Source: Macrostomum hystrix (Eukaryota; Animalia; Platyhelminthes). From it: a DNA stretch of 64,000 nucleotides. The stretch spans positions 2,232,001-2,296,000 of the forward strand of contig CATNEN010000002.1 of the NCBI GenBank assembly GCA_950097015.1, read 5' to 3'. The position numbers and the translations under genes are program-made. Numbering within the stretch: position 1 is the stretch's first letter; each line of letters starts with the position of its first letter. Of this stretch, positions 1,021 to 41,142 are shown one piece after another. The notes beneath the pieces were generated by a model. It made no database searches. It worked only from the letters and a program-made list of their open reading frames with translations, and was not told where the DNA came from.

Positions 1021-1110
1021 GGTGACAGTAAGAAGCAGCCCAAAATGTTCTCAAGCCGAGTTTAATAAAGCCCCCTCGAGTCGATCTTCTTCAAAGAAAC
1101 GAAAACGACA

Positions 1111-1332
1111 ATGAAGTGGCAGTTTGCTCTTGGCCTCCTGCTGTGCGTGGCCCTAGCTGTCTACGCCAGCCCAGCTGATCAGAACGACGAAGATGAAGAG
1201 GTCGCCGCCGCCCTCGCCGACATGGCCGAGCCGGCCCAGGCCGATGAGAACGAGGCGCCCGAAGCCAAGTTCCGGTTCCGAGTCCGCAGGCGTCGCCGCT
1301 TCTACCGGGGATACTACTTCTATGGCAAGTAA
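1111..1332 (+). CDS. Secreted Arg/Tyr-rich cationic peptide precursor, gene 1 (73 aa; AMP-like)
   Basis: Signal MKWQFALGLLLCVALAVYA, acidic pro-piece ending PEAK, then FRFRVRRRRRFYRGYYFY-GK. TATA upstream, AATAAA at ~1450, five paralogues in the window. Confidence 0.85.
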   Translation: MKWQFALGLLLCVALAVYASPADQNDEDEEVAAALADMAEPAQADENEAPEAKFRFRVRRRRRFYRGYYFYGK

Positions 1333-1852
1333 GCATCTCGGACAGCACTATGGACCGACACTGCGACACCTGATCGAACTAACCCAAACAGTGCACAGTA
1401 AACTTAAAAACACTCAGCTACTTCCATTTCTAGGAGTCATATGGCTACTAATAAAGTTCTGAATCAGTCAGATGGTTTACGACCTTTGTACTCGCAGATA
1501 ACATCCTACATTGCTGAGACATTGCATGTGAAACTTACCGATGTAATAAAAAATTGATAAGAAAAATAGCTGGCTTTTAGTCAATAAAATAATTACATAG
1601 TAAATCTGCACTTTCTAATTGATTTTAAGTTCTTTCAGAGTCATATTAAATCTTTGTGACTTGTCGAGCCTTAACTGTAGTAATCCATGATTTGACCTTC
1701 ACCAGCCTAAAAGACGTTGAAGGAGCATCCATGCTATGAAAGAGCATTCTGTTGCTTACGAACAAAAATTATACTCTTATGAAAAAGCATAGAAACTGTA
1801 ACATCCTTTCAAAAATGGAACAAACTGTTTTGTAGGAGAAAACAATAATCAA

Positions 1853-2150
1853 GACGGTCCCGCTGATGCGCTGTCAGGGGTGCTACAGGGCGACACACTT
1901 GCGCCGTTTCTATCCGAAACTAAACCCCAATCCGAATCCGAAACTTAACCCCAATCCGAATCCGAAACTTAACCCCTATCTGAATCCGAAACTTAACCCC
2001 AATCCGAATCCGAAACTTAACCCCTATCTGAATCCGAAACTTAGCCCCAATCGAACCGACGGCTTCCTACTGTGCAGGCGCATCGGTCGCCGCTAAAACG
2101 ACAAGGGCTAGACCTCGCCCTCCTGTCTTCATCAGTTGATGGCGTCCAGA
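1853..2150 (+). mobile_element. Deleted relic of a non-LTR retrotransposon RT (paralogue of 15452-16460)
   Basis: Encodes GVLQGDTLAPFL (RT motif). Flanks match 15454 and 15922-16090. Confidence 0.65.
1915..2052 (+). repeat. Hexamer-mosaic simple repeat (AATCCG/AAACTT/AACCCC)
   Basis: Tandem aatccgaaacttaaccccaatccg units replacing part of the RT relic. Confidence 0.85.
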
Positions 2151-2343
2151 TAACGTCTAACTTCAAACCTAAGTGGAGAACAGAACAGTGTCAATTTTTG
2201 TTTATGATTCCTGGCCTGACGCACTTTTATCTCATGTAACGTTGGTCCTTGGGACCACAGCACTTTTTGAAAGAGTGAACATCAAGAGATGCAAGGCAAT
2301 ACTTCAATTTAGCCACAATATAGGCAGCAAAGTATTATTCATA

Positions 2344-2928
2344 TGTAGTAGTTCTATATATTTTGCATTTTAGCTAGTAGTAATTTCATTTCTCGCGCTA
2401 TAATATTTTCTTGCGATATATATATTATATATAGGTACATATTATAAATATTTTTTTTATTTTAGTAAATTCGCGCTATTGAAACAAAGTTTATAAATGC
2501 TATATAAGCAGGGAGTTTCTGTGGTAATAATACAACCCGCCAGTGAGCCGAAAAGGCAATAACTGAGTTAAAGATCTGTTTGAACAAAAGCCAACGTGTT
2601 GTGTCACTTATTAAGGAGATACCTTCAAGTGTTAAGATAAGACAAGGATTGAGGCTGTGACCCTCTGATCCTGGAGAAACGCCCAGCAGAGACTGGAGAA
2701 TAAGAGATCAGTGCCTTAGAGGGATAAACCGCTCGTGCCAGTGCAGAAGCGCTACCTAGGAGAATCTCACAACGTAAGAGTTGTGGTGTTAAAACGGCCC
2801 TTTTCAGGGCCACCGAGTTAAAGACATACGGAGAACGTGAACAGTAGAGAAGGAGCTAAAAGAACAGAAGAGGCCAAAAGATACGCTACCAAGAAAGAGA
2901 GAAAAGTAGAGAGACAAGCCCTGTTACA
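2344..2928. mobile_element. Solo LTR (585 bp; 4-bp TSD suggests Ty3/Gypsy)
   Basis: Starts TGTA, ends TACA, flanked by CATA at 2340-2343 and 2929-2932. The paralogous site in unit B (~16795) is empty with a single CATA. Internal TATA-like tataaatgctatataa near 2492. Confidence 0.75.
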
Positions 2929-3761
2929 CATACAAAATACATTTGAGAAGCAGTCTTACTGCGCCTCCATTACAAGCTGCAAAGCTTCCATAATTTCCTA
3001 ACTATTTGGGACCCAGCATGCAGGGAAGTTGGAATCAATATAAAAATCAAGGTCAACAATATTGTGATAGCGAGCCACGCCCAGGCATGAATACAGCGTC
3101 CTATGGGGTCACCAGCGTCTGTACGAGACTGTGTCAAACTGGTCGGTGGCGTAGTGACACATCTAGATCCTTTTGTGTAAAATCATATTAAATAGTATTT
3201 TTTGCTTTAGAAAAAGCTTGATGGTTGATGACAAGCATTACTATAAAAAGAGAATATCACAGACAATCACTCTACGCATGCACAAAATTGAAAAAATTAA
3301 TGTCATGGCGTCTCAGAGTAGTTGAAGGGTGAGCGATTGGTCGAGCTTTGGGGGGGGGGGCAACGCCACAATGCCACAACCTTCAAGAAGATTAAGCTGT
3401 TTTTGTGAAGCAAATGCGGCAACACCCCCATTGTGCGGTAAGCAGTGAGTCAGTCTGATACTACAATCAACAAAAGTGAGAAAACGCAGATGCTGGGAAT
3501 CCCTACCAACAGATACAGAAAATGCTTTCTAGGTCGAATATTCATTCCAATTTGCTAAAATTGGTTTCGACACACGATTCGGTATTTGGCAGTGGGCACG
3601 TTTTCAGGGGTTCCGATCTCAATAGAACACCAAAAACGTGACGCTCAACCCCCAGTCTAGGCGTTTATAAATATGGGACAGCCAAGGCGCGTTCCCAGAA
3701 CTCCTTCACCCAGCAGAGCTTGCGCTAAATAGCAGTCTCTCTTAAACAAAACGCATCAGCA

Positions 3762-3878
3762 ATGAAGTGGCTGTTTGCCCTCGGTTTGCTACTGTGCGTA
3801 GCCTTGGCCGTCTACGCCAGCCCGGCCGATCAGAACGACGACGATGAAGAGGTGGCCGCTGATGCCCTGGCCGACATG
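3762..3878 (+). pseudogene. Precursor gene 2, truncated by LINE insertion (mature peptide lost)
   Basis: MKWLFALGLLLCVALAVYASPADQNDDDEEVAADALADM, near-identical to gene 4. Homology stops at 3878 and resumes at ~6377, corresponding to 18238. Confidence 0.85.
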
Positions 3879-6377
3879 TGTCGCCTGGCTGATGCTTGGC
3901 GATGGATCATGTCCACCTTCTGTGGTGCCAAGCGCAAGCGCAAGGGGCAGGCGCAAGCCTGGCAAAGAGACCGAGATCCAGGGCGGCGGAGGGAACTCCG
4001 GCCGGGACCTTCCAGGACCGTCCCAGAGAAGAATCCGCAACCGACAGAGTGGTCCTGGACTAACCACCCAGGACACCTCTCTAAACAACAAAATGGTGAC
4101 GCGTCACACGGCACGCGGCAGGCCCGGTCAGGGCAAAGGCACCGGCAAGAGAGACGGAGACGAGAGAAGAGTGCGAGGTAGGGTTAAATGGAAACTGAGA
4201 ACCATCGAGAAGAACCCAGGTCCAAGGACAGAGCACGAGAAGAAGGCGAGAGAGAGAAGGCGGCGGCAAAGAAGAACGAAAAGGAGAGAGAGAAAAAACC
4301 ACGAAAATAGAAAAACAACCCAAAAGGCCTGGAAAAATAAAAAAAATAGAAATTGCAACTTGGAACGTGCAACGAGCAAATATACGAGGTAGCAGATTCG
4401 GAGAGATAGTGAAAGCGGCAGCAGCAAAATGGGATGTCACACTAATAACGGAACTAAACGAAGCCAACAAAGGGATCCGAACCTTCCGAACCGGAAAGAC
4501 AGAAACAACACTAGTCCACTCGAACAGAGTAGGGATCTTGCTGGACGAAGACAGTTCGACCCTGTGGAAAATGACCGGCCGCAAGCTCCATATAACAGAA
4601 CGCACAATCACGGTTGAAGTAGGAAACTTCATGCTCATGGCCATCTGCCAACCAGTTAAAGGAAACGAGGACTACGAAAGTAAGATCCTACTCATCCGCG
4701 ACGAAATCGCCAGGATGCAAATGCATCGATTGGAAAAGATATGGCAAAAACTTTCAACAGCGCAGGCAAGTACGGCATTGGACGAACAAACCAACAAGGA
4801 AGAGACCTACTGACATGGCTGGAAGAGACAGGAACTGTATGGGCAAATTCTTTCTTCAATGAGAGACAAAAGGCACATGGAAGAACCCCCATAGCAAACG
4901 CTGGTATGAATTGGACGGCTTCATCATCAAGAAAGAACTAAGGCATGTAATGGTAGAAAGGATTTCTACGGATAACAGTGAGAACGGATCGGATCACAAA
5001 CCTAAAGTCATGACTCTAAGAACGAAAGTAGAAAAAAGACTTCGGAGAAGAATTTACCAACAACAGGACACGCAGAGAGAGAAGCAGAAAAAGACGAATA
5101 TCGCGTGGGACAGATTGAGAGACGAACACACCGCGAAGAACTACAGAGAAAAGCTCGAGGAGAAGATTTAAAAGAAAGAATAGATCCGAACTAAAGTGGC
5201 TGTAATATGAATGGATAATACGTGAGACAGCCCTGGAGGCCTGCGGAGAGAGAACAAAACAGACTAACCCGTGGATGCTAGGACATGAAAAAGAATTAAC
5301 AAAACTAAATCAAGACATTGCAAACATCTTAAAAGAGAGAAATGAAACCCAGAGCAAAAGGAATAGCAGACGAAGAGAGTAAGAGCTGCTGCAGATTAAA
5401 GAGAAACTAGTAGGAAAGAGACGAGAAAAGAAACAAAAGCTGACAGAATAGGAAGAACGATGGTGGAACGCGATCATAGCAGAATGCAGAGAACATCATG
5501 CTAAAGGGAACATGGGGACGATGTACGACTGCCTCAAGAAACTAGGACTGAGAGAAACTTTCAACAACAGTGAGAACGAAACATTGCTCTCAGCCGAAGA
5601 ATTAAAAAAACACCAAGAAGTGATTCAGAAGGACCGTTTCGAGAACGTCCCAGAAGACGTAATGAGGAACGTCAAGAGCTGCCCAAAGCCGACATTGACA
5701 CACGAAGAACTAGAAGAAGCCAACGAAGAACTCGGGAAAGAAATAGGGAAAAAAGAATTTGACGATGCGCTAAAACAAATGAGAGACGGAGCACCGGGAG
5801 AGGACGGAATACGCCTAATATACTTTAAGAAAGCAAATGAAGAAGTGAGGAACGCGTTGTTTGAAGAAGTGAGGAAACTCTTCTCAACACCAGCAACGGC
5901 TTGGAGGGAGAGCGATCGAATAGGCCAAATTGTAGCGCTTTTTAAAAAGGAGACAGGAAGAACTTAAACAACTATAGAGGAGTGTGCCTGCTACCGTTCC
6001 TGAGCCGAGTCCTGGCACGCTCAATCTCAAGCAGACTGAGGATCTGGTCTGAACGACTCAAGTTGCTAGATGAAAACCAAGCCGGTTTCAGGACGGGACG
6101 CTCCACCATGGACGCCACCCAGATCATGTGGAGACTACAAGAGAACGCCGACCAATACAACCAATCACCAGACAAAGTAGATGCCGAAATGACATCACTG
6201 ACGCTGCTTGACCTAAAAAAGGCGTACCCGCGGATAAACAAGCCGGCCCTCTGGGCCTTACTAACACACTACGAGATGCCACATCACATGATACGCAAAC
6301 TACAGGACATGCATGAACACACGGAGTACAAGGTCAAGGGGCGCAAAGAAGAAAGCTCGACCTTCTTACCAGAACGC
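3879..6377 (+). mobile_element. Degenerate RTE-like non-LTR retrotransposon, 3' truncated
   Basis: APE motifs IATWNVQRAN, GKYGIGRTNQQGRDLL and SDHKP. RT motifs APGEDGI, ENQAGFRTGRSTMD and LLDLKKAYPRI. Multiple frameshifts and stops; RT ends before YADD. Confidence 0.85.
3894..3980 (+). ncRNA. Candidate HDV-like ribozyme at the 5' end of the RTE-like element
   Basis: P1 GCTTGGCG/TGCCAAGC, P3 CCA/TGG with L3 CCTTCTG, P4 CAGGC-GCAA-GCCTG, J4/2 CCGA, P2 TGGATC/GATCCA. Atypical 4-nt gap between P2 and P3. Confidence 0.45.
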
Positions 6378-8947
6378 GGCTGCCTTGGTAAAAGTGCAAT
6401 CCTTGAAACCAAAGTAGAGTCAATAATAATGAGCACGTACTTATAGCTAAACCGTTCTTTGAAATACGTTTCCTTGAAATTGTAAACGCCGGTCATGAAA
6501 GGTATAATAATTCACAATAACTCATTGACTTGTATGACTGGTGCAAAGTTTATAGGTAAACCGGAGAATATGTTTTGATAATTCTGCTACTGTTTTTATC
6601 GAGCTACCGCTCGTATCTTTATATCATTCGTTTGTAATGAGCACAGACTCACACAACTGTCTGTTTTGAGCAGACTGGCAGACAGCAGACTTGCAAACCT
6701 TGCAAAACTACGAGCTGCTGACAATAGCTGTTGTTGGTTCTGACTTCGTCGCAAAAAACTCTTTCGGAATACAGCAGGAAAATACATTGCTGTTAATATA
6801 CAACCTAGCAACCTTAGTCAGTTTAGGAATTGTCTTTCGTGACTCATAAAAAACTAGTAAAGATTTGTTCTTGCTACGAGTTTTAGAAGTTTAGAAGCTT
6901 AGAAGTTTACGATTTAGAAGTACAAAATGTTTTCAAATTCATACACTAAAAATTATTCATAGCCTTAATTTTCGCGATATCCTACTTCCTGTTGGACCAT
7001 CTCGGACTCACGACCTGAAGGTCGGGGTGTCGATTCCTGACTCTGTAATTCCTGACGATTTAGTGCCTGCGTTACAAGTCCTAATAGCATAATCATGACC
7101 ATGATGATTGTGAAAATACAAAGAACAGTATAATTTGGCAAACTCTTTGAAAAACAACTTTTGTGGAAGCAACTTCTCCGTTTTTAAGAAAATTTCACAA
7201 TGACGTAAACTTAGTTATCTGTACTTTTGTCTTAGTTTCGATGTAAGCAATGTCCAGCTTTTACGTTGTTTTTTATGCAACAGTTGGCAAGAACAGTTTG
7301 TCAATAACTGCAGACGCTGATTCTTTCCATTGAATTAAACGATTATAGAACCAACCAACTAGAAATTAATAATTTAAGAAGAGCCCATAGTCTATGATAG
7401 AAGGCAAAGCCAGAAGCCGTTGTCTTGCATAAAATTTACAAACAATGATAGTTAAAATGCTAGACAATGGTAGATTGAATGGTATGTTGCATCGTTGAAT
7501 AATGGCCAGAAACACATACGCTACGCGAAATTAAAGCACATTGTTTTAATGCTTTGACTGAGACCCAGTCGCCATTGCTTAACACTTCTTGTTGTCATTG
7601 TTCAACACTTCTTGTGATTGCTTCACACTTTTTATTATGAAAATTTTTCACACTTTTTTGCTTGGGGTTTCGGCCATAAACGGTACAATTTTGGTAGAAT
7701 TTGTTGGGCTCTGAGCTACAGTTGCTAGGGTTGTAGCCATAGACTAAACTATATGAGCTACATAAAGTTATCCGCAAGATAAAGTTAGAAATTGTGAATT
7801 AAGGAAAACCGCAAGGAATAAGGAAAATCATTTCAATGACACCAATTCCACCCCTTATAAACTGGAAACATCTACCAGTCAATGCACTTAACGGAGTTAA
7901 GCTTGACGGACTACAATTTTTGTCTGAGATTAGTCAAAATGACCACGCATTCGCGTGAGTCGTATCGCAGATCTTCATGAAGTTGGACACAAGTATGAGT
8001 GGCATTATGTGCATTACCGGCCCAAAGAGCGAGCGAACCGTGCGATGTTACCTTTCACGAAAACGAGACCGTGCTGTGTTCGAAGCATCGACTGCGGTAA
8101 AGCACCGCTTAGAACGGCCAATTGTGGAAGCCCACCGGAGCTACGGCCACCGAAAAAGAGACAAGAGTTCTTATCAGAGAAACCTGTGAAATGACCCCGA
8201 GCCAAGAAGTTCACCTTTTAATGGGTAAGTTAGAACTTCGCAGGGAAAGCTATTTCTGAATCCACTGCTACTTTATTTTGCTTTTTCGATCTTGCAGTTC
8301 GAAGCACCCAAGCGTAAGTATCACGGCTATTCGAAAATTGCAGATTCGAGAACTGCACTTTCAACTTTACGAAGTGACTTCCTGCGAAACTTGGATGGAC
8401 TATGACTCTTACCTGGAGCATCACAAAACTTTGTCTTATTGGCGTGTTTTGTTTAAATTGTTATATCTCAATACATTCATAAATTTACACATTCTCTATG
8501 GATACAAAATACCATAGACTATGTAGAAAGTGTTAAGCAATCGACTTTTAAAATTGTCATTACGTCGAAGTGAAAGCTTAGAACAATGGTTGAGATTCAA
8601 GCTGGTTTGACACAAGTACTGAAGCGTCACAAAAATTCAGCAGATTTTGCCAAACACCAGTGCGAAAATACTGGCAATTGGGTCTTACGTTATCTGGTAA
8701 CTTGCGTTTTTTATCAAATAAAATATAATCTAATTTTAATCTAATCAAACACTGTGTGCGCATACACCATTTTACCCTCAATTTTGAACAACGAAAACTT
8801 CAATGGTGACAAACTCTGATTCAATTTTGGCACAGCGAACGACAAAAGCTACACTCTATGGTAAATTCTGTCGAATTTGAATCGGAGTTTGTGATTCGGA
8901 TTGGGACGGCCTGTCAGCTTATCCAGTGCATTTTGTCTGCTGTTATA

Positions 8948-9021
8948 CACGAGGCCAAACCCCAACAAAACGTGCACAAACCCCCAAAAAAGTCTCGGGG
9001 TGGGCTGCGACAGGAGCGGCT
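8948..9021 (-). repeat. Inverted copy of the gene 3 promoter repeat (left part; continues at 13165-13212)
   Basis: Reverse complement of ~14474-14580, split by the Ingi insertion. Confidence 0.85.
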
Positions 9022-9123
9022 GGTGGGGGAGCTTTCGCGACCCCGAGCGCGCCTGGCGCGCTTCCCAATGCTGCCGCCTTCACGTGGCGGGACCGTCCGG
9101 ACTCACCCCCGGCGAAGTGCAGC
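9022..9123 (+). ncRNA. HDV-like self-cleaving ribozyme candidate
   Basis: P2 GCTGCC/GTGCAGC, P3 GCC/GGC, L3 TTCACGT, P1 3' strand GGGACC, J1/4 GT, P4 CCGG/CCGG, J4/2 CGAA. G1 coincides with the first base after the TSD. Confidence 0.7.
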
Positions 9124-12100
9124 GCTCACCCTGGACATCGTCTGGGGACAGGACACCTCGGGTTTTTCCCAGCTGGACCAGCCTCACCGGCTCACCTGGC
9201 CCAGCTGCTCCTCCGAGCCGGCGACGTGGAGACCAACCCTGGGCCACCAACGTCGTACTCATGCGGTGGCTGCAGCACTAACGTCCACAGCTTTCGCATT
9301 TTACAACTTAACGCCGCCGGCCTCCGCGCCCGTAAGCTCGAACTCCTCCATTTCCTCGAGGCCAAGTCCATCGATGTCGCCTGTGTTCAGGAGACGAATT
9401 TGACGGCGACCGGGTCCCTCCCAAGACTGCCGGGCTGGCAATTTGCCGCCCGCAGGGACCGTCGAGCCAATCGCGCTGGCGAGCCGGCGGAGACGCCGCA
9501 CGGCGGAGTCTGCTTCCTGATCAAAGAAGGTATCGACTTCTCCGAGATCCAGATGCCACCCCCCAAGGCTGTCAACTCGGCCACGGAAGCCTCCGCGGTC
9601 ACTATTCACGACTCGCGTATCGGCCGCCCACTCTCGATCATTAACCTCTACATCCCACCGGTCCGTGCAGGAGACGGACGGGTCAGCGACTTCGAACCAG
9701 ACTGGCTCCCATCCGGCCCCGACACCGTTATCCTCGGCGACATTAACGCGCACCACGGGATGTGGGACGAGAGCTGCGAGACCGACGACGCCCTGGGGAC
9801 CGAGTTCGAAAACTGGGCCACGACGTTCGACTACGTCGCGCTTAACGATGGCTCCTTCACCAGAATCAGCCCCAGAGGCCTGACCAGCGCCCCGGACGTG
9901 ACCTTCGTCCCGGCCAACTGGCAAGACCGGATGACCTGGAAGACGGAGGCACACATCGGATCCGACCATCTCCCTATCGTTATCGAGATTCGAAACAGCT
10001 CCAAGAGGCCCCCTAAGCGGAAACGGGTGACCCGCTTCGCCTACCATAAGGCCGACTGGACCCTATTCCGCGAGCTCATTTCCGAAGAACTCAAGCATTG
10101 GCAGCATCGCCCACCACGCTCGGTCGCTGGTGCAACCGTTAAACTGAACCACGCCATCCGTTCAGCCGCTCGAGGAGCGATTCCGCAGGGCTCGCGCCGA
10201 GCCCCAGTAGCATGGTGGTGCCCTGAGGCCGAAGCTGCGTGCACCGCCAGACGTCAGGCCCTCGAAGCTCTCCGCACGGATCCTGACAACGACGAGCTCG
10301 CCGCGGCGTATCAAGCCGCGGGTGCTTTCGCCACCGCGTCCATCCGTAGGGCCAAGGAGGCACTCTGGCAAGAATTCATATCCGACAACTACAATAAACT
10401 GGACTCGGCCGCGATCTGGAGAATAATCCGAGTTCTCGACGGGCGGACACCGGCGGCCAGACCATCCGCAGCCATCAAGGACTCGGCCAACCGCTGCGCC
10501 ACCACGAACTCACAAAAGGCCAACCTTTTCTGTAGAGAGTACGCAACGGTCGCGCAACTTCCTAAAGACAAAGTGCGGGACCACACAGTCAAACTTGAGG
10601 CCAGAAGAGCCCTTGATGAGCCCTGTGCGTGCAACGGACAACGCCTGGGAATGTGTGCTGACTTCGACCTAGAGGCGCTCACCCGAGCCCTCCGCGCCAT
10701 CCCGAGCCGGTCCGCCCCAGGGCTAGACGGGATTTCCAACTTGATGCTGAAGAATCTGCCGCCAAAGGGGATCGAGCTCCTCCTCTTCACCATCAACCTT
10801 TCTTGGCGTAGCGGCCAGTGTTGCGCTGCCTGGAAAATCGGCGACATCAGGCCGATACACAAGCCTGGGAAAAGCCCGGACGCGACCTCCAGCTACCGCC
10901 CCATCTGCCTCCTTTCCTGCACGGCGAAAGTCGCGGAACGTCTGGTTAACGAACGCCTCACGCACTACCTGGAGTCCGAGAACCTCATCCACCCGGCCCA
11001 GGCCGGCTTCCGCCGCGGTCGCTCTACCGAAGAGCAGATTGCCGCGGCATCCCAGTACGTCTTCGACGGCTTCCAGAAGAAAAAACCGGCAAACCGTACA
11101 GCGATGCTGTTTGGGGACTTTTCGCATGCATACGAGCGCATGTGGCGACAGGCCCTCATCGCTAAGTTACGCCGTAAGAAAGTCCCGACCTGCACGCGCC
11201 GCTGGATTCACTCGTATATCTCCGATCGACGTGCCATTGTGACCTGGGACGGCAATCAGAGCCCCCAACGCCTCTTCCCTGAGGGCCTCCCCCAAGGCTC
11301 CGTCATCGCCCCGACTCTGTGGACGGTGTTCGTCGATGACCTGTTGGAGGATGCCCCAGAGGACATATTCTCTCTGGCGTACGCCGACGATACGACCTTT
11401 GGCGCACAAGGCACGAATTTGAAGATCTGTGAAGCAAGACTGCAAAGCGCGGCGAACTGGCTCGTCGAGTGGTGCACGACTTGGAAAGTCGACCTGAACA
11501 AATCCAAAACAGTCGTCACCTACTTCTCCCTCGACCCACGTGAGACAAACGGCAAGGCGAGACCAAATATCAGACTCGGAGACATGCCAGCCCCATTCGA
11601 GGAACACCCCAAGATGCTGGGCGTGTACCTCGATTCACAGCTCACGTTCCGCCACCATGCGGCGGTCCAAAAGCGCAACCTGCAGAAGCGGACAGGCGCC
11701 CTGAGGTGCCTTGCTGGTCGAGACTGGGGGCGCGACCCGAGATCTCTCAGACAGCTTTACCGCACCTACGCGGAAGCGGCGGTCCTACACGGCGCCTCCT
11801 CTTGGATGAGCTTTGCGTCCGACGCCTGCCGCCGGGAAGTTGAGACCCAGCACCTCGCCGCAGCGCGCGTTATCTCGGGGTGCTGCCGATCCACCCCGAC
11901 TGCCGCGCTCCTCAAAGAGGCCGGACTGGCTCCACTCAACACCTCGGCTACGGCCGCTGCGGCTACGCTGATGGAGAAAACCCGGCGAGCAAGACAACAG
12001 ACACCGCTCAGAACGCTGGCCGAACTCGACGTTCAACCGAGAATCCGCGCTCACGGCAACCACGGCGATTTCAGACGCAACTGGAGGACGGAGGCCAATG

Positions 12101-13161: not shown

Positions 13162-13394
13162 CTAACAGGAGCGGCTACGTGAGGCCAAACCCCCAAAAAC
13201 GTGCTCAGAAAACGGAATTAAATTGCAATACTTGAGTTCTTTTACACATGCAGCATTCAGTCCGCACACTTCAGACAACTTGATTACTTAATTCGAGATA
13301 TATACCAGCTAAGTATAGCTATTAATTTTAAAGACCCTAATAGGGCTAAATATACAGCCGACGGCACAGCCCTAGTAGTGATCACGTGTCACAT

Positions 13395-13620
13395 CTGAAA
13401 GCTGCGTATGGCTGTTCAGTCCGTGGACTGGGGGGACGCCACACCCACCCTCAATTACCCCAGCTAATACTGCAGGTACCCATTTAAGAGCTGGGTGAAC
13501 TGACGCAATGCAGAGTTAAGTGTCTTACTAAAGGTAAAGAAAATATTTAAGTTGAGTCGGAAATCCCGACCTTAGAGTCGTGAGTCCTACACTCTAAGCA
13601 CTTGGCTTCAGCCCCCACTT
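13395..13620 (-). mobile_element. SINE family A, copy 2
   Basis: Near-identical to 12-245. Confidence 0.7.
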
Positions 13621-14473
13621 GATTAAATATCATTCAAAGCCATCATTGGTTGCTAAGTTTTGTTGATATCCAGTAAAATCGTAGCAAACAGCAGTGACAT
13701 GGCGGATTTTTCTTATTCATCAATGACGGAATAACTTATTGATGTTGTGCCCACCACTGGGTACATTGTATTAAATTGCAAAACACTTTTTTCTTCTATG
13801 CATCCTGAGACGTGTCAGAAAAACTTACTGAAATACCACAAATGATTTGATAAATTGCTTGTAGAGCTGACATCGTCAGTACTAAATGTTGATAACCAAA
13901 GTGAGCGATCGTTATGCAATTAAAAAAAATAAAAAATGAAAACAGAACTTTTGAACTTCTAAGATGAAATGAATTAAAAATTCTGTCTCAGTTAAGGCCG
14001 AACGAGACAAGGTCACGAAAGTACATGGCGTTTGCTTCGAGTTTTTTAGACTCTCATTAACAATGCCAGCTCAAAATACTTGGACGAATTCCATGAGAAA
14101 ATTTTCCTGCCTAATTACCGGTTCAGACGAAAAGTATGGTAGCATTATCTTCATGGCACTCGTAATTTACTTCTCAAAACAAAGCGATATTGTCATTTTT
14201 ATACATTTTTAATTTTAATTCGAGAAATAATGTGAGCTATCTACAACTCGTATGTAAATATAACTATCAATGCAGTATATTTTACAGTTTTTATCGAGTG
14301 GATTAGCGGATGCTAAGCAAGGGTAAGATTAAAGTTGTCAAGTAGTTTTCTGTCAAGAAGAGAGTTATTAATTATACCTGCTTGTAAATTTCTAGCCTGG
14401 TCAGAAAGCTTATAGCGTGGAAACACAGTTGAATGGTCTGTATAAAAATAAGAGGCTGCTTTGCAAGCCACTG

Positions 14474-14616
14474 CTTTTCTGAGCACGTTTTTGGGGTTTG
14501 GCCTCACGTAGCCGCTCCTGTCGCAGCCCACCACGAGACTTTTGGGGGTTTGAGCACGTTTTGTTGGGGTTTGGCCTCATGTAGCCGCTCCTGTCGCAGC
14601 CCACCCCGAGACTTTC
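14474..14616 (+). promoter_or_regulatory. Gene 3 promoter with a 71-bp tandem duplication; TATA altered to CAATAAAT
   Basis: GCACGTTTT at 14483 and 14554. Gene 1 has a single copy of this unit. Confidence 0.7.
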
Positions 14617-14717
14617 GACGTCAATAAATAGTGACAGCCAGAAGCTTCTCAATTTTCTCAAGCCGAGTTTAATAAAGCATCCTCGAGTGGATCTTCTTCA
14701 AAGCAACGAAAGCGACA

Positions 14718-14915
14718 ATGAAGTGGCAGTTTGCCCTAGGCCTCCTGCTGTGCATGGCCCTAGCTGTCTACGCCAGCCCAGCCGATCAGAACGACGACCA
14801 AGAAGAGGTCGCCGCCGCCCTCGCCGACATTGCCGAGCCGGCCCAGGCCGATGAGGACGAGGCGTCCGAAGCCAAGTTCCGGTACCGAGGTCCGAGTAAC
14901 TCGGAAAGGCACTAA
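14718..14915 (+). pseudogene. Precursor gene 3, mature-peptide region deleted
   Basis: Pre-pro region near-identical to gene 1. After EAKFRYR the Arg/Tyr-rich coding segment is missing and the frame runs into 3' flanking sequence (GPSNSERH). Confidence 0.75.
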
Positions 14916-15451
14916 AGGCACTCGGAAACACTTTACAGTAAACTTAAAAACACTCAGCTGATTTCATTTCTAGGAGCCCTATGGCTACTAATATAGTTCT
15001 GAATAAAGTTCTAATAAAGGCCTGCCACCTTTCTACTCGCAGATTACATTCTACATTGCTGAGATATTGCATGTGAGACCTACCGATGTAAGAATATTAA
15101 ATAAAACGTTATAAAAACTGAAGTGGCGCTTTGTTAATGAAACCGTTACGTAGTAAATCTGAGCGTTCTAATTGATTTTTTTCTTTCCGAATCATATTCA
15201 ATCTTCGTGAATCTTAGACCTCAACAGTAGCAATCAATGGCTTGACCTTCACCAGCCCCTAAAGAAGTTGAAGGAGCATTCTGTTGCTTAAGAACTAAAA
15301 TTTTATGATATAGCTTAGCAATTGTAACATCATTGCAAAAAGGGAACAAACTGTTTTGCATGAGAATACAAAAACCAAAATAGTTTGCGATTTCTACGTA
15401 GCGTGCAAACTGTATAGCGTAGTTATGCTTCCATCAAAGCCGCTGCAGAAA

Positions 15452-16460
15452 TGACGGTCCCGCTGATGCGCCAGTGCTCAGTTTCGTCTCGCACATTGTG
15501 CTGATCCCGAAGAAGGCCGGGACGACAGTGAAAGAAGACTACCGATTGATGTTCTCCCGTATGCCTGTACTTTCTGACATTCTGATGTCATTTACTGCTA
15601 AGAGATTTAACCAAATGCTTCTCGATCGTTTGCAGTCAGTGCTGGACCCGTATCTGAGGTGCAAAAATAACGGGTTCTGGCCACAGCTCCTCGTGACAGT
15701 GTCGCAGATCCTTGCTCTCCGTCGTGTGATCTAGGAGGCGCGCGTCCACCAGTCAACACTAATTATTATCTTCATTGTATTTCGACCTGTGCTGAGAGCT
15801 TGGTCGCGCAAACATTCGTTCTTCGTGCCCACCGGGTGCCGCAGCATTCAGCTTTTAGACGGCATCATTTCGTTGTACCACGACACGCGTGCTGCTCTGG
15901 TGACGGCAGACTGCCTGTCCGGGGCGCTACAGGGCGACACACTTGCGCCGTTTCTATCCATGCTGCTCTGGAACTGGGTGCACCGGATTGCTTTCCGCTC
16001 GACTGACGAGGGCTTCCTACTGTGCAGGCGCATCCGTCGCCGCTAAAACGAGAAGGGCTAGACCTTGCCCTCCTGTCTTCCTCAGCTTGTGGCGTCCAGC
16101 ACCGGATTGACGGCTTCGTCAGGCGGCAAGCGTCGGCCTAGTCGACAAGACGTGGAAGACCGAGGTGCTGACCGTGCCGTTGACATTCCAGCGGTCCTGA
16201 CATGCTGCTGCGGAGACGGGCAGAGCTCACTCGCTGCCAGAAGTTCATCTACGCAGAGGACTCACCTGGGCGGCCTACCGGTCCATCAGTCCAAAGCGCT
16301 GCCCGACCGCCAGAGGGCTCGGCTGTATGGTCGAGACCATCGTGCTGTACAACGTAGAGTCAAGGACACTAACGGCAGAGCCGCAACTGGATTCGGTGTA
16401 CTCGGGGCTGCTCCGCGCGGCCTTCCCAGCTAACGAGAACCTCCGAAACGAGGCCGTGAT
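15452..16460 (+). mobile_element. Decayed non-LTR retrotransposon RT fragment (RTE-related)
   Basis: IVLIPKK...DYR, NNGF...SQILALRRVI, GALQGDTLAPFL; contains stops and frameshifts. Confidence 0.75.
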
Positions 16461-17684
16461 GCGTGAACCGTTCCTTTAAAGCGTAAAACTGTGTTTGAAA
16501 TCGTGTACCAGCAAAAATACAAATCCTGAGTTGTGACGAGCAATCAGGCTAGGAAATCAAAGCAATTGATTCGTTTGTTTAGACAAATAAGACCTGACAA
16601 TTGCTCATAGATAACTCCCAAGTTCAAACCTAAGTGGAGAACAGTGTCAGTTGTTGTTAATGACTTTGAGGTCTGGGCGCTTTTATCTTATGCAACGTGG
16701 GTCCTTGGGACCACAGCCCTCTGTGAAAGAGTGAACACCAGGAGCTGTAAGGCAATACTTCAATTTAGCCACAATATAGGCAGCAAAGTATTATTCATAC
16801 AACATCCATTTGAGAAGCAGTCTTACTGCGCTTCCATAACAAGCTGCCAAGATTCCATAATTTCCTAACTATTAGGGACCCAGCATGCAGCGAAATTGGA
16901 ATCAGTATAAAAATAAATGTCAACAATATTGCGATAACGAGCTACGCGCATGAGAAACATTTATAAATAACCTCACGTAGGCCCAGGTATGAGTACAGGG
17001 CCCTATGGGGTCACCAGCGTCTGTGCGAGACTGTCTCAAGCTTGGTCAATGGCGTAGTGACTAGGCCATTGTGTAAAATCATATTAAATAGTCCTTTTTG
17101 CATGAGAAAAAGCTTGATAGTTAATGAAAAACATTACCGTGATAGAGATGATCACAGACATTAACTCCACGCATGCACAAAATTGAAAAAATTCATGTAA
17201 TGGTGTCTCTGAGAAATTAAAGGGTGAGCGATTGGTCGAGCTTTGGGGGGGGCGCCACAATGCCACAACCTTCAATAAGGGTTATTAAGTTGTTTTTGTG
17301 AAGCAAATGCGGCAACACTGGCAATGGCCAACACGCCATTGCGCGGTAAGCAATGAGTCACGGGCACACAGTCTTTGCTACTACAATCAACAAGAGTGAG
17401 AAAATGCAGATGCTGGGAATACCTTCCAACAGAGACAGAAAATGCTTTCTAGGTCGAATATTCATTTCCATTTTGCTAAAATAAGAAACTATTTGGTATT
17501 TGGTATTTTGTAGTGAGCACGTTTTCAGGGGTTCCGATCTCAATAGAACACCAAAAACGTGACGCTCAACCCCCAGTCTGGGCATTTATAAATATGGGAC
17601 AGCCAAGGCGCGTTCCCAGAACTCCTTCAACCACTGGAGCTTACGCTAACTAGCAGAGCCTCTCTTAAACAAAACGCATCAGCA

Positions 17685-17960
17685 ATGAAGTGGCAGTTTG
17701 CCCTCGGTTTGCTACTGTGCGTAGCCTTGGCCGTCTACGCCAGCCCGGCCGATCAGAACGACGACGATGAAGAGGTGGCCGCCGACGCCCTGGCCGACAT
17801 GGCCGAGCCGGCACAGGCCGATGAGGAGGACGCCAGCCCGGAGGCCAAGTTCTTGATTCGGTTCCGCAGGCGCCATCGCGTCTTCCGCCGCCGATTCGTT
17901 CGCCGCTACTACCGCCGCCGCTTCCACCCCTACTACCCTTTTCCCTATGGCAAGAAGTGA
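17685..17960 (+). CDS. Secreted Arg/Tyr-rich cationic peptide precursor, gene 4 (91 aa)
   Basis: Signal + acidic pro-piece ending PEAK + FLIRFRRRHRVFRRRFVRRYYRRRFHPYYPFPY-GKK. GCACGTTTT at 17517, TATA at 17587, AATAAA at ~18047. Confidence 0.85.
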   Translation: MKWQFALGLLLCVALAVYASPADQNDDDEEVAADALADMAEPAQADEEDASPEAKFLIRFRRRHRVFRRRFVRRYYRRRFHPYYPFPYGKK

Positions 17961-18856
17961 GACGTGCCATTGACGACTCGTTGCCTCAACCGGAGTAGCT
18001 GACAGGACCGGCCTTGCATCGATACGCTTCTGTGATTAGCAATCAACAATAAACAAATGACATATTTATTACTATTTTTTCAGAAGAAAAGATCTTGTTT
18101 GATGGATTACATCCTGTTTTGCCAGACCATGACGATGTATTTTACAAAATAAACAAATTCAGTCTTCGCTGACTGTAAAAGTGTTCATATTGCAGTCTGA
18201 TGAGTTTAGCTTTCAATTTCTGGTGACACTGGGTTCTGCGGCTGCCTTGGTAAAAGTACAATGCTTGAAACCAAAGTAGAGTCAATAATAATGAGCACAT
18301 TCTTATAGCTAAACCGTTTTTTGAAATACGTTTCCTTGAAATTGTAAACGCCGGTCATGAAAGGTATAATGATTCATATTTTTACTTGTATGACGTGCAA
18401 AGTTTCAAGGTAAACAGGAAAAATTGTTTTGATAAATCTGAACTACTGTTTTTATCGAGCTACTATCTTTATATCATTCGTTTGTAATAAACACAGACTC
18501 ACACAACTGTCTGTTTTGAGCAGACTAGCAGACAGCAGACTTGCAAAACTACGAGCTGGCTGACATTAGCTGTTGTTTGTTCTGACTTCGTCGCAAAAAA
18601 ACTCTTTCGGAATGCACCAGGAAAACACATTGCTGTTAATATACAACCTAGCAACCTTGGGCAGTTTGAGAATTGTTTTTCGTGACTCACATTAAAAAGC
18701 TAGTGAAGATTTGTTCTTGCTACAAGTATTTAGAAGTACGAAATGTTTTCAAATTCATACACTAAAAGAATTCATGGCCTTAATTTTCACATCAAAGAAC
18801 AAGCGCCGCATACTTCTCGATGCCTAAATTTGGGGTTATGGATTTTACTCGTTAAG

Positions 18857-19070
18857 TGGCTGTAACCTAGTGGTTTGACCGTCTCGGACTCACGGCCTGA
18901 AGGTCGGGGTGTCGATTCCCCACTCAACTGAAATAAATTGTGTACCTTAGCGAGACATTTGGGCGCTGCATTACTTTAGCTCATCCAGCTGCTAATAGGG
19001 TAGCAGCATCAGCTGGGGTTTGGTATCCTTCTAGTCCATGGACTGAACAGCTGTACGCAGCCTTCAGATA
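18857..19070 (+). mobile_element. SINE family A, copy 3
   Basis: tRNA-like head (A and B boxes) and the same tail as copy 1. Confidence 0.65.
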
Positions 19071-19774
19071 CTGTGCTAGGCCTTTAGATAATTTCTAAGA
19101 ATATTTTTGGACCTGAAAGAATTGCTGGAAAAGAAGCTTGTCAGAAGTTTTAACCGGATGGAAGTTGGTGACCTCTCAGTAATCGAACCAACTTTCATTC
19201 CAATCTCCAAAGCAAACCGCGCATGTTGGTTTTGTAAATACGAATAAGAACAGATCTGCAATTCTAGAATACATTTCTGGCGTTAACAAGAAATACGGGG
19301 TCTCTCAATGCAAAGAATGCAGTTCATTTTCACTCACAGCATGGCATCGCCCTCAAGCTATGGGGGGTTTCAATTTAATAAAAACGCAATTATATTTCGG
19401 TGAGAAAAAAGTCTCTTTATTTGCAGCCCTTGAAGACAACACACACAGCTCAGCTGAGAAAGCATTGTCCACCCCTCACCCTCAATTAAAGCATTTCACA
19501 GGAGCAGCACAGCAGCAGCTCATTGGTATCCGTGGAAATTTACCTAGTCAGTGGCATTTTCCTACAATACCCCTGCGCATCAGCTCATCAGGCCACTGCG
19601 GCACGTTTTCTGGGCTTCTGGATCGCAACTTGACGCCCGAAAAAACGTGCCCACACGCGAGTGTTTGGATTCTATAAATTAACGCCCCCCCGCAGCCCAG
19701 TCAGATTCCCCCCAAGAAACCTTCATCGCTGACCTATCGGCCCCTCCTTCTGCAAACCGAAGCAAGCCCCAGCA

Positions 19775-19996
19775 ATGAAGTGGCAATTCGCAGTCGCTCT
19801 CCTTCTGTGCGTGGCCGTGGCCGTTTATGCCAGCCCAGCCGATCAGGATCACGACGATGACGCCGAAGAGGTGGCCGCCGCCCTCGCCGACATGACCGAG
19901 CCCGAGCAGGCCGACGAGGAGAACGCCGCCCCGGAGGCCAAGTGGCGCGTGCGTCGGCGCTTCATCCGCCGCTACTACCGCCGTCTAGGCAAATAG
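19775..19996 (+). CDS. Secreted Arg/Tyr-rich cationic peptide precursor, gene 5 (73 aa)
   Basis: Signal + acidic pro-piece ending PEAK + WRVRRRFIRRYYRRL-GK. GCACGTTTT at 19601, inverted AAAACGTGC at 19642, TATA at 19673. Confidence 0.85.
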   Translation: MKWQFAVALLLCVAVAVYASPADQDHDDDAEEVAAALADMTEPEQADEENAAPEAKWRVRRRFIRRYYRRLGK

Positions 19997-20526
19997 GCCC
20001 GTGTTGAATGAAGTGCATGAAGCCTCCGATACCTAGGATGGAAAAACTTTGACAATGGGCTTTCTGATAGAATGCTACGGCTCGTATCTGTATCTTCTAT
20101 TTGCAAAACTCAATTTTTTATGTCCATTGACTGCTGATAAAATCTTAAGATCTGTTTTCTTAAGACCAGAACTGAAGAGTGAAAATAAAAAAATTGAGCC
20201 AAAAAGTTTTCTTTTTCTGAGGGAAATTGTCTTAGCATTCCATATTTCGGTGTCGTTTTCATTTCATTTCTCTAACGTGCCTGATACTATGATGCTAGAC
20301 GTAAACAGTACAAAGAACATACAATTTTTCCCTGGGGAAGACCACGGGGATATTTCAAATCCCCGCTGCCCACTTCACGGTAGCTCCCAAACTGAATGAC
20401 CGATTGTCGTGAAAGTCCACCATCTGGATCAGATTTTCCGCACTGTACGATGCTGATGTTTTGTGGTTCTGGTGCAAAACTTTAGCGATGTTGCATGAAA
20501 AGTTTCGTCATTGGAATTGAAAAGCA

Positions 20527-21150
20527 GATTCCGTCTACACTCCATGCTGTGATTCCATCTACACTCCATGCTGTGATTCCATCTACACTCCATGCTGTGA
20601 TTCCATCTACACTCCATGCTTCGATTCCATCTACACTCCATGCTGCGATTCCATCTACACTCCATGCTGCGATTCCATCTACACTCCATGCTGTGATTCC
20701 ATCTACACTCCATGCTGTGATTCCATCTACACTCCATGCTGTGATTCCATCTACACTCCATGCTGTGATTCCATCTACACTCCATGCTGTGATTCCATCT
20801 ACACTCCATGCTGCGATTCCATCTACACTCCATGCTGCGATTCCATCTACACTCCATGCTGCGATTCCATCTACACTCCATGCTGTGATTCCATCTACAC
20901 TCCATGCTGTGATTCCATCTACACTCCATGCTGCGATTCCATCTACACTCCATGCTGCGATTCCATCTACACTCCATGCTGCGATTCCATCTACACTCCA
21001 TGCTGCGATTCCATCTACACTCCATGCTGCGATTCCATCTACACTCCATGCTGTGATTCCATCTACACTCCATGCTGTGATTCCATCTACACTCCATGCT
21101 GCGATTCCATCTACACTCCATGCTGCGATTCCATCTACACTACTGGCTGT
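20527..21150. repeat. 24-bp tandem minisatellite (ttccatctacactccatgctg[t/c]ga), ~26 units
   Basis: Direct reading of the sequence. Confidence 0.95.
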
Positions 21151-21687
21151 GATTCAATATATTTTAATTCTGTGATTCAATCTACATTTTTTGCTACTCA
21201 GAAACTCACAGTTCTCAAGCTGCCAGCTCTCAATACATAGTCATCAAGCTAGGAGTCGCAATGGCCCATAATTTTAATTGAATTTGAATTGAATCGCATT
21301 TTAACTTTTCCACTTAACGGAGAATTGTCTATGGCTTAAATTCAAGAAACATTACAGTCTGAATGTCATTGTGATGCACTTTTAAACCATAGAAATTTCG
21401 AACAATGTTATTTGTTGCCAATCTGGAGATAATTAAAAGATATATTTTTCTAAGTTGTCTTAAGTAACTTCTAGAAAAAGGTAGTTAAGTATATCTATTC
21501 AGAACTAAAAATCTAACTTTATTGATGCAAGTACTTGTAAATGTCGTTGAAATAACTGCTGTTTGAAGCAGATAGAAAATTAGCATTTAATTGAGATTAA
21601 CCAAGTTACGTCCGGAATTCAATAAAATCAATGTCAACCGCTGCCCTCAAAGTATTTCTTCCGTGTTCAAGCTGTCCCTGAAGCTAT

Positions 21688-21969
21688 CTAGTAGCTTCTG
21701 CGGCGGTAATAGCGCCTGTAGAAGCGGCGGTAGTGGCGCGAATATCGTCGGTAATAACGGCGGTAGTGACGCCTCAGGAAGCGCCGTCTGTAATAGCGGT
21801 ACTTCTCCTCCAAGTCCTGCCCGTCATCGGCGGCCGCCTCCGCCACGGCAGGCTCGGGCAGTTCTGCCAGGTCGGAATCAGTTTCGTCCTCCTGCAGGTC
21901 GGCCGGGTTGGCGTACACGACGGCGAGGCCGACGCACAGGGCGAGAGCCAGCACAATTTGCCACTTCAT
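21688..21969 (-). CDS. Secreted Arg/Tyr-rich cationic peptide precursor, gene 6 (93 aa; divergent, convergent orientation)
   Basis: Signal MKWQIVLALALCVGLAVVYA + acidic pro-piece ending LEEK + YRYYRRRFLRRHYRRYYRRYSRHYRRFYRRYYRRRSY. Minus-strand TATAAAT at 22046-22052. Confidence 0.85.
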   Translation of the reverse strand: MKWQIVLALALCVGLAVVYANPADLQEDETDSDLAELPEPAVAEAAADDGQDLEEKYRYYRRRFLRRHYRRYYRRYSRHYRRFYRRYYRRRSY

Positions 21970-22633
21970 GCTTGCGGTGAGTTAACAAACTGGTGTCCAC
22001 TGACCGGTAATGCTCGGTTGGATGTTTTTCACCTGTTGGGCTTCGATTTATATTCTGGTGCAGCCTTGGCTCCTTTAATAGACGAGCGAGACGCGGCTGA
22101 GACTTTGTATTTGGTCGGAGCCCGTTTCACCCGAAACGGGGCCACGTGAATCAGAAACTCTCATTGACTAAGCGAGGAGCGGGTTTCTGGGTAGTTCATT
22201 GTTAATCGGAAGGCCAGCCTGTGAAGGACCCACAGCAGCTATTTGAATGCGTTTTATTTTCATTGCGTTTCGAATTTTGAATTGAGCCAGGGTCTGTATG
22301 AAGGTCTGTGTTTTTTAGCTGGGTAGCAAAAAATGTCGAGACGCATTTCATTATTAGCAATGTGGTAAACCTGACAGAAAGTGCCCTGCGACCCGACAGA
22401 CGCGACAGAAAAATATTATTGCTGTGAGTGAGAGCTCACGTGTTCTCTTCTATTCAATTGAACTGGGCAGAGCACGTGATGCTCAAACTGTGTGGAGGTG
22501 CAGAAAATAAACAAAAACCTTCAATTAAATTCTGTCAACTTTGATAAACATTTCTGGCAAACTGCTAGCCTTTGTGGTATACAACTTTGGTGAAGCCAGC
22601 CTATAATGATATAATTTGTATTCCTTGTGCCCT

Positions 22634-39513: not shown

Positions 39514-41142
<1,629 letters not shown>

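Follow-up and report, generated by a model that had tools for sequence, protein, structure and literature searches.

Myticalins of Mytilus combine a conserved signal with a hypervariable, Cys-free and Arg-rich (partly Pro/Arg/Tyr) mature region, carry a charge-balancing anionic region, frequently undergo Gly-directed amidation and are encoded by a multigenic family with pseudogenes; they proved active in vitro (Leoni et al. 2017, PMC5577615). The signature of a conserved signal and a variable mature region has been reported for myticalins, toxins and other families of antimicrobial peptides (AMPs) (PMC5577615). The arminins and other taxon-restricted AMPs of Hydra place an anionic N-terminal part before a cationic C-terminal part; they are genus-restricted and form tandem paralogue clusters that arose from recent duplications. 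Here we describe a cluster of six paralogous open reading frames (ORFs), c1 to c6, in the flatworm Macrostomum hystrix. They lie at positions 1111-21969 of a stretch of 64,000 nt (assembly GCA_950097015.1, contig CATNEN010000002.1, positions 2,232,001 to 2,296,000 of the forward strand), which we call the 64-kb window and to which all coordinates below refer. Four copies are intact and two are broken.

Judged from their sequences, the members of the c1-c6 family are very probably precursors of secreted, proteolytically released and mostly amidated polycationic peptides. This conclusion is based on the combination of a secretory signal, a masking pro-piece, a cleavage residue, an amidation signal, a hypervariable product, birth-and-death evolution and restriction to one genus. 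We are more tentative about function. By analogy, and considering third-party AMP predictors run on the homologues of Macrostomum lignano, the cluster would belong to a lineage-specific multigene family whose secreted products are most likely host-defence peptides, antimicrobial or microbiome-shaping. We assign this reading a probability of roughly 45%; it was chosen because this class best matches all precursor features together.

The resemblance to myticalins is a functional one only. The order of parts is signal, cationic region, Lys-Arg and anionic C-terminal extension in myticalins, but signal, anionic region, single Lys and cationic region in Macrostomum, and myticalin genes have three exons, whereas the coding sequences (CDS) in the window are uninterrupted. 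A hidden Markov model (HMM) search of 1.84 billion cluster representatives returned no molluscan match, and there is no sequence similarity to myticalins. The Hydra families share the order of anionic and cationic parts with our cluster, but the same exhaustive search contained no cnidarian protein and hence no sequence relationship to arminins. Also, many Hydra AMPs have Cys patterns, and arminin expression and activity are documented, whereas the Macrostomum family is known from sequence. By these comparisons, the cluster is a member of neither the arminins nor the myticalins.

Bac5/Bac7 and PR-39 are proline/arginine-rich linear AMPs; no database search returned them. Such Pro/Arg-rich and Arg/Trp-rich AMPs resemble the window peptides in their high Arg content, the absence of Cys and of a fixed amphipathic fold, and the removal of a pro-region. 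A Logan-run relative of the family resembles them further in that Pro occurs in its repeats, next to Arg, Val and Leu. However, the window tails are rich in Tyr/Phe and not in Pro, and the precursors are unrelated, with no cathelin domain according to Pfam. Flatworm FMRFamide-like peptide (FLP) and neuropeptide F (NPF) precursors likewise have a signal peptide, basic cleavage sites and a Gly amidation signal, but they keep a conserved C-terminal motif, whereas the Macrostomum family has no such motif and varies in the mature part. Adhesive proteins of the 3,4-dihydroxyphenylalanine (DOPA) type share Tyr-rich basic sequence with the tails.

Layout of the cluster and gene anatomy

The first-pass annotation had reported six paralogues with a conserved signal, and all six ORFs are present at the given positions, with a similarity far beyond chance. 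Neither tblastn with all six copies nor an HMM of the signal plus pro-piece (pre-pro region), applied to ATG-started ORFs of at least 30 aa, revealed a seventh copy in the window. The copies and their parts are as follows:

1111-1332 (+): c1, intact CDS
943..1455 (+): c1 gene unit, with ACGT box 943-956, TATA box (TATAAAT) 1014-1020 and AATAAA 1450-1455
1111-1167 and 1168-1269 (+): c1 signal, and acidic pro-piece ending in the conserved Lys
1270-1329 (+): c1 Arg/aromatic tail with C-terminal Gly-Lys; stop codon 1330-1332
3762-... (+): c2, broken copy with one break; unit 3596..3878
14718-14915 (+): c3, probably a decaying copy; unit 14552..15007
17685-17960 (+): c4, intact CDS
17517..18053 (+): c4 gene unit, with ACGT boxes 17517-17530 and ~17557, TATA box ~17587 and AATAAA 18048-18053
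17685-17741 and 17742-17849 (+): c4 signal and pro-piece
17850-17957 (+): c4 tail with C-terminal Gly-Lys-Lys; stop codon 17958-17960
19775-19996 (+): c5, intact CDS
19601..20189 (+): c5 gene unit, with ACGT boxes 19601-19614 and ~19645, TATA box ~19673 and AATAAA 20184-20189
19775-19831 and 19832-19942 (+): c5 signal and pro-piece
19943-19993 (+): c5 tail with C-terminal Gly-Lys; stop codon 19994-19996
21688-21969 (-): c6, intact CDS, the most divergent copy
21518..22150 (-): c6 gene unit, with CACGTG box ~22148, TATA-like boxes ~22080 and ~22052, and poly(A) signals (ATTAAA/AATAAA) 97 and 165 nt 3' of the stop codon
21969-21910 and 21909-21802 (-): c6 signal and pro-piece
21801-21691 (-): c6 tail of 37 aa, (RRYY)-type with a period of ~4 and without terminal Gly; stop codon 21690-21688

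In each window copy a TATA-type box is located 83-111 nt 5' of the ATG and an AATAAA or ATTAAA 88-188 nt past the stop codon, a spacing that fits a predicted unspliced mRNA of ~400-550 nt. The genes had been called intronless; this holds for the CDS, which runs without interruption in the window copies, and is to be understood for the CDS only. GC content at third codon positions is 0.75-0.84, at or above the 0.59-0.76 of neighbouring genes. The pre-pro DNA is 83-97% identical between copies and the flanks 70-94%, with the pre-pro region above either flank in every pair.

The two broken copies differ in the kind of damage. In c2, the first 39 codons (3762-3878) and the promoter boxes are kept and are 97% identical to c4; after codon 39 the match ends, a retroelement remnant stands in place of the rest, and the ORF continues into foreign sequence. 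The pre-pro region of c3 (14718-14876) is intact and 93.7% identical to c1 at the nucleotide level. A single internal deletion took most of its tail together with the original stop codon, leaving a 12-aa tail with a net charge of +2; in addition, the TATA box is altered, and dN/dS (the ratio of nonsynonymous to synonymous divergence) between c3 and c1 is 0.66.

Precursor architecture and processing signals

A protein alignment of the six copies has an almost invariant N-terminus and an acidic middle part, followed by Arg/aromatic tails that cannot be aligned. A Met-Lys-Trp-Gln start, a Leu-rich core and a Cys are signal features common to all six copies; in the window the signal comprises 19-20 residues, ends in V-Y-A and obeys the -3/-1 rule. 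The pro-pieces of the window copies have 34-37 residues (34-44 in the family) and a net charge of -11 to -13. They end in a conserved Lys, present in all five window copies that reach the junction and in at least 90% of 17 aligned family members. The ending had been described as (P/L)E(A/E)K, which captures the general pattern, but c3 ends in SEAK, so that the motif is to be widened to (P/S/L)E(A/E)K. The junction Lys is single, with no basic residue upstream, and 16 of 18 distinct tails begin with a hydrophobic or aromatic residue (F/W/Y/I/L).

Without their Gly-Lys ends, the window tails are Cys-free peptides of 15-37 residues with a net charge of +8 to +18. Arg makes up 36-49% and Tyr/Phe/Trp 24-40% of their residues, adding up to 60-87%; across the family, tails contain 42% Arg and 16% Tyr. 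For the four tails quoted in the first-pass annotation, the lengths, the Arg counts and the lack of Cys are exact, as is the statement that three end in GK or GKK. Amidation-type ends are thus present in c1, c4 and c5, while c6 has no Gly. Among the distinct tails of the family, 14 of 18 terminate in Gly, Gly-Lys or Gly-Lys-Lys, and Gly accounts for 1.4% of tail interiors. At a conservative expectation of 7% this enrichment of terminal Gly corresponds to a binomial p of ~1.6e-13, which is uncorrected for phylogeny, like all statistics across paralogues given here. A Gly-basic end is the canonical substrate for carboxypeptidase trimming and peptidylglycine alpha-amidation.

The charge of the pro-piece co-varies with that of the tail (Spearman -0.55, p 0.034, n=15, uncorrected for relatedness). 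Subfamilies with tails of +2 to +4 have pro-pieces of -3 to -6, and those with tails of +8 to +19 have pro-pieces of -10 to -15; an M. lignano member with a charge of +42 is an outlier in this relation. That pro-piece charge follows tail charge across the family appears to be a new observation, and it supports a masking role of the pro-piece. Compared with shuffled sequences, tail periodicity stands out in c6 (90 degrees, p<0.01) and in c5 (p=0.02), and c1 and c4 do not differ from the shuffles. A period near 4 is also found in the long M. lignano member, and short M. lignano tails alternate. The proposal that X-Ala/X-Pro dipeptides make the pro-piece a dipeptidyl-peptidase substrate, as in promelittin, had to be abandoned: in c1 only 5 of 17 in-phase dipeptides are of this type, and the phase breaks at the second.

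Relatives in Macrostomum lignano

A phmmer search with c4 in 5.8 billion sequences returned two hypothetical proteins of M. lignano only (E=3.8e-22 and 4e-15). A profile search of all 1.84 billion cluster representatives gave ten matches, eight of which are M. lignano proteins. One of the remaining two is a relative from Logan run SRR31628392 (P0011), with a tail made of an Arg-Val-Leu-Pro repeat. The other, a protein of 4433 aa (P0006), was rejected as a compositional match, consisting of alternating acidic and Arg/Val segments without a signal. Together with entries from the supplement of Irvine et al. 2023, these searches place about 15 M. lignano gene-ID groups in the family, including the following:

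BOX15_Mlig025063/008283/022283/027113/019489/006956: M. lignano homologues, hypothetical proteins
Mlig024774/026085, 026130, 023933, 010792, 015087, 015779, 020420, 017210: M. lignano sister subfamilies

Over 19 residues, c1 and c4 have the same signal as four M. lignano proteins (P0001-P0004). In common with the window copies, the M. lignano homologues have the acidic pro-piece, the junction Lys, a Cys-free Arg/aromatic tail and the terminal Gly, as well as an uninterrupted CDS, a promoter with ACGT box and TATA box, and paired or tandem loci; their tails, however, are different peptides. In the sister subfamilies, tails are short and alternate Arg with hydrophobic residues, are composed of Arg/Trp, or form a 77-residue (RRYY)-type repeat with a charge of +42. 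All four features that define the Macrostomum 'MKWQ' prepropeptide family are present in the window cluster. As far as current databases show, the family appears restricted to Macrostomum, and look-ups in the protein collection found no window family protein identical to a deposited one.

In M. lignano the members are spread over many loci, often as pairs at distances of 2.6-9 kb: there are two genes 9 kb apart (L001), a tandem pair at a distance of 2.6 kb (L006) and head-to-head pairs (L007, L008). The L006 pair includes an unannotated member (7191-7385 (+) on contig NIVC01002033, 2.6 kb 5' of the annotated one) whose tail differs at a few positions. Small genes of this family are thus evidently under-annotated. 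At L001 the deposited protein P0001 (96 aa) differs by 27 nt in frame from the contiguous ORF at 10001-10318 (105 aa, identical to P0004); located within the Arg/Tyr repeat, this difference is more likely a repeat-unit insertion/deletion or a modelling artefact than an intron. Several 'partial' M. lignano models contain translated 5' untranslated region, of a length fitting the TATA position. The GenBank gene models of M. lignano were built from a genome-guided RNA-seq transcriptome, so that family homologues are transcribed in M. lignano.

When the window was compared by blastn with M. lignano loci totalling 100 kb, alignments were confined to the gene family and to short repeats, at 78-91% identity. 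Pfam has no family for any of the six copies, a profile search of the PDB gave nothing under E=0.1, and none of the 73 matches from a signal-pattern scan of JGI metagenomes is a relative. A word-indexed search with a 17-sequence alignment added nothing, its candidates being swamped by low-complexity words.

The family had been presented as unrecognised. It is indeed without a name, a described function or a recognised unity in the literature searched, where the M. lignano gene IDs were not found in full texts, but homologues have been deposited and computationally flagged. Several M. lignano members are listed by Irvine et al. 2023 (S5 File) among the flatworm AMP-like peptides, in groups 71, 116 and 142 and ungrouped. 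There they were cut at internal Arg runs, dropped as single-genome ('same genome') groups, never synthesised and not named as a family. In the same study the homologues were SignalP 4.1-positive and AMP-like according to 73-100% of 11 predictors. What appears to be new, on the basis of the aligned pre-pro region, is that these entries scattered through a supplement constitute one superfamily.

Duplication history and selection

A self-comparison by blastn revealed two duplicated blocks, and two retroelements lie in or between them:

18..6890 (+): duplicated block A, carrying c1 and c2
13392..18737 (+): duplicated block B, carrying c3 and c4, with 76-90% nucleotide identity to block A
3879..6375 (+): degenerate remnant of a retroelement without long terminal repeats (non-LTR) in c2, with a Pfam RVT_1 match
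8926..13161 (+): non-LTR retrotransposon ORF, 1411 aa uninterrupted, with endonuclease, reverse transcriptase and RNase H (Pfam)

Synonymous divergence (dS) is 0.089 for c1/c3 and 0.081 for c2/c4. Since the block duplication each block has lost a different member, c2 in A and c3 in B, so that one intact gene of each type survives; two broken copies out of six and this reciprocal loss point to birth-and-death evolution. Copies c5 and c6 are older singletons that converge on a 24-bp satellite. The remnant in c2 replaces ~436 nt present in c4, and its frame is in at least four pieces (at least three interruptions). The ORF at 8926-13161 neighbours the peptide genes, between blocks A and B, and does not belong to them; near its N-terminus we noted an Asn-Pro-Gly-Pro '2A-like' motif.

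The pre-pro region is, by the substitution pattern, under strong purifying selection. Its dN/dS is 0.04-0.16 at a dS of 0.56-0.94 among c1, c2, c4 and c5, and 0.13-0.35 against M. lignano copies (dS 0.66-1.2). Mean pairwise identity falls from 0.87 in the signal to 0.54 in the pro-piece and 0.38 in the tail, where composition-matched shuffled tails reach 0.33. Reading frame and composition are therefore conserved in the tail, but not its sequence. The comparison of pre-pro and mature regions had been suggested in the first-pass annotation; together with the enrichment of terminal Gly, its outcome strengthens the layout proposed there, namely signal, acidic pro-piece, hypervariable cationic peptide and Gly-basic end.

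A promoter module common to the family

A 14-nt element containing the ACGT box matches six times in the window at no more than one mismatch, compared with 0.02 matches expected. Five of the six are located 163-235 nt 5' of c1-c5:

943-956, 3596-3609, 14483-14496, 17517-17530 and 19601-19614: sites of the 14-nt ACGT element

When aligned, the sequences upstream of the window and M. lignano genes have a CACGT(G/T) box and a (C/T)ATAAAT box in common, and in most members a second box, AAACGTG, is found 18-30 nt 5' of the TATA box. At least one ACGT box precedes a TATA-like box in every copy examined, in the window as well as at M. lignano loci L001-L008, and family-wide this promoter sits ~85-125 nt 5' of the ATG. 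Within the window the module is nearly confined to the family. The module provides independent evidence for functional, co-regulated genes; the factor that binds it would be of the bHLH or bZIP class. The family-wide module appears to be new and points to one regulatory programme, which should be readable in existing chromatin data.

Host defence as the preferred explanation

According to our proposal, each gene would be transcribed from its own TATA promoter with ACGT/E-box-like elements as a short unspliced mRNA; the signals are present in the DNA, and transcription of the window copies is assumed from them. The N-terminal 19-20 residues would direct entry into the endoplasmic reticulum and be cut off after V-Y-A, as suggested by the -3/-1 rule and by SignalP-positive M. 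lignano homologues with an identical signal. In transit and storage the acidic pro-piece may mask the cationic tail, and it probably contains a sorting or recognition motif, in line with charge co-variation and purifying selection. An endoprotease would then cut after the nearly invariant Lys. Given the strongly enriched Gly, Gly-Lys or Gly-Lys-Lys end, a carboxypeptidase would trim the terminal Lys and Gly-directed alpha-amidation would follow, giving a Cys-free peptide of 15-37 residues with a net charge of +8 to +18, rich in Arg and Tyr/Phe/Trp. By analogy only, the peptide may be released at the body surface or in the gut, where it would bind polyanionic microbial envelopes or enter cells, in the manner of other linear peptides rich in Arg and aromatic residues. 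Tandem duplication, tail diversification and gene loss would result in a changing peptide repertoire.

Several observations weigh against host defence. With 36-49% Arg, the tails are much more densely charged than typical AMPs, and in one M. lignano member 77 residues carry a charge of +42. No uniform amphipathic periodicity runs through the tails, and an AlphaFold2 model of c4 from an 8-sequence alignment is uninformative, with a predicted local distance difference test (pLDDT) of 59 and a predicted template modelling score (pTM) of 0.21. AMP predictors give high scores to almost any short cationic peptide, and only 8 of 20 peptides synthesised by Irvine et al. 2023, from other groups, were active. 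In the pipeline of that study, ProP cuts were predicted within the Arg runs; as these runs are proprotein-convertase sites, the mature product may be shorter than the full-length tail. Finally, neuropeptides just as typically have amidation signals and KK sites like those of the sister subfamilies, and a composition rich in Arg and Tyr is likewise characteristic of adhesive or coacervating proteins.

If host defence is correct, the family would fill a visible gap. According to Irvine et al. 2023, flatworms have neither big defensins nor CS-alpha-beta peptides nor myticalins, and no AMP repertoire has been described for them. A large family that is transcribed in M. lignano and has an AMP-type precursor layout is a concrete candidate for these missing effectors, in a laboratory flatworm with transgenesis, genome assemblies and a single-nucleus atlas of RNA and of transposase-accessible chromatin (ATAC). 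If the peptides are not antimicrobial, an amidated poly(Arg-Tyr) secreted family with charges up to +42 would still be an unusual secretory product in need of explanation.

Alternative explanations

The processing signals themselves raise the question if the precursors serve signalling, as neuropeptides, hormones or pheromone-like molecules. They would then pass through the regulated secretory pathway and be cut at Lys, and possibly at Arg runs, into short amidated aromatic peptides acting on receptors. The strong enrichment of Gly, Gly-Lys and Gly-Lys-Lys ends fits this, as do KK or KKK junctions in several M. lignano members, the ProP cuts predicted at Arg runs and one M. lignano tail that would yield an Arg-Phe-amide end; a rhodopsin-type G protein-coupled receptor (GPCR) ORF 5 kb from the cluster would also fit, but may be coincidence. 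We nevertheless regard signalling as unlikely. Neuropeptide families keep the mature peptide while the spacer drifts, and the reverse is seen here; the tails have no common C-terminal motif, their amidated residue being predicted as Tyr, Leu, His, Arg, Ile or Phe; each precursor holds a single peptide and no repeated copies; and in c5 and the long M. lignano member the products of cleavage at Arg runs would be implausible. A role in binding polyanions, as a structural, adhesive or coacervating material, is doubtful to about the same degree. Here, once cleaved, pro-peptide and tail would form a charge-neutral condensed phase in granules; the released tail, its Tyr residues possibly hydroxylated as in DOPA-type proteins, would bind to mucus, glycocalyx, eggshell or substrate. 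Coacervation is driven by Arg/Tyr 'sticker' chemistry, and Arg and Tyr are abundant in small mussel foot proteins. The 60-87% share of Arg and Tyr/Phe/Trp in the window tails agrees with this, as do the co-varying charges of pro-piece and tail, adhesion and release in M. lignano governed by charge interactions, and period-4 (RRYY)-type repeats of up to 77 residues and a charge of +42, which go beyond normal AMP design. On the other hand, structural proteins do not usually have amidation signals or tails as short as 8-17 residues, the hypervariable sequence and length of the tails speak against their having a defined role in a material, and the Gly/Asn-rich context of DOPA proteins is missing. 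Furthermore, the adhesive proteins identified in M. lignano are of very large size, the KR-regions of Mlig-ap1 alone comprising >3,600 residues, and the releasing-gland vesicles of this species are protein-poor. A literature search on rhabdite protein chemistry gave nothing usable.

In a variant of the coacervate idea that we consider very unlikely, the precursor, cut at the Lys, would yield paired peptides of opposite charge, a pro-peptide (-11 to -15) and a tail (+8 to +42), stored as a charge-neutral coacervate and both acting on release. The cationic half would condense on or stick to polyanionic mucus, glycocalyx or substrate, and the conserved anionic half would itself count among the secreted products; as the selected product would include the pro-piece, this would explain pro-piece conservation. 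For the temporary adhesion of M. lignano a 'small negatively charged molecule' has been postulated as releasing factor (Wunderer et al. 2019), and the anionic half could be such a factor. Fast evolution under sexual selection or conflict would be expected if the peptides were reproductive secretions of seminal fluid or female tract, and the family is indeed genus-restricted, quickly diversifying, secreted and small; in M. lignano, many secreted transcripts that have no homologues are limited to the prostate. We judge this quite unlikely: no sequence feature is specific to reproduction, a conserved pre-pro region with an amidated polycationic tail fits defence or signalling better, and the 27 kb of supplementary text from the prostate screen contain no family sequence, a weak negative. 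That the products are deterrent or toxin-like, directed against predators, prey or competitors, is highly improbable. Polycationic peptides are generally membrane-active and the conserved signal with hypervariable mature region is as in toxin families, but these peptides are Cys-free and without a fold, and we know of no venom apparatus in Macrostomum. Two broken copies out of six and low-complexity, CGC/TAC-rich tails might suggest non-functional chance ORFs in repeated DNA. This is effectively refuted by the selection and promoter data, that is, a pre-pro dN/dS of 0.04-0.16 at near-saturated dS and conserved promoter and poly(A) signals; in addition, tail frame and composition are kept in all intact members, and the M. 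lignano models are transcript-derived.

Neighbouring features in the window

The GPCR mentioned above is an intronless ORF at 27094-28098 (-) of the rhodopsin family (7tm_1, E=1e-35). The protein collection contained no relative of it at E<=1e-20. We treat the proximity of this receptor to the peptide genes as coincidence. Six sizeable tandem-repeat arrays yield long spurious ORFs on both strands:

20527-21155: period 24 bp, between the convergent c5 and c6
22632-24226: period 28 bp, just past c6
25791-26252: period 20 bp
42034-43176: period 46 bp
45398-45844: period 22 bp
46356-47053: period 12 bp

A voltage-gated cation channel of 1976 aa is encoded at 49669-55599 (+). It has the four-repeat architecture (Ion_trans x4, Na_trans_assoc) and is, unusually, a single uninterrupted ORF. 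In its vicinity we found Sin3-like pieces (47321-48274 and 59146-59685), a Maf1 fragment (31573-31971), a THAP gene (36955-37566) and a C2H2 zinc-finger gene (39412-39930).

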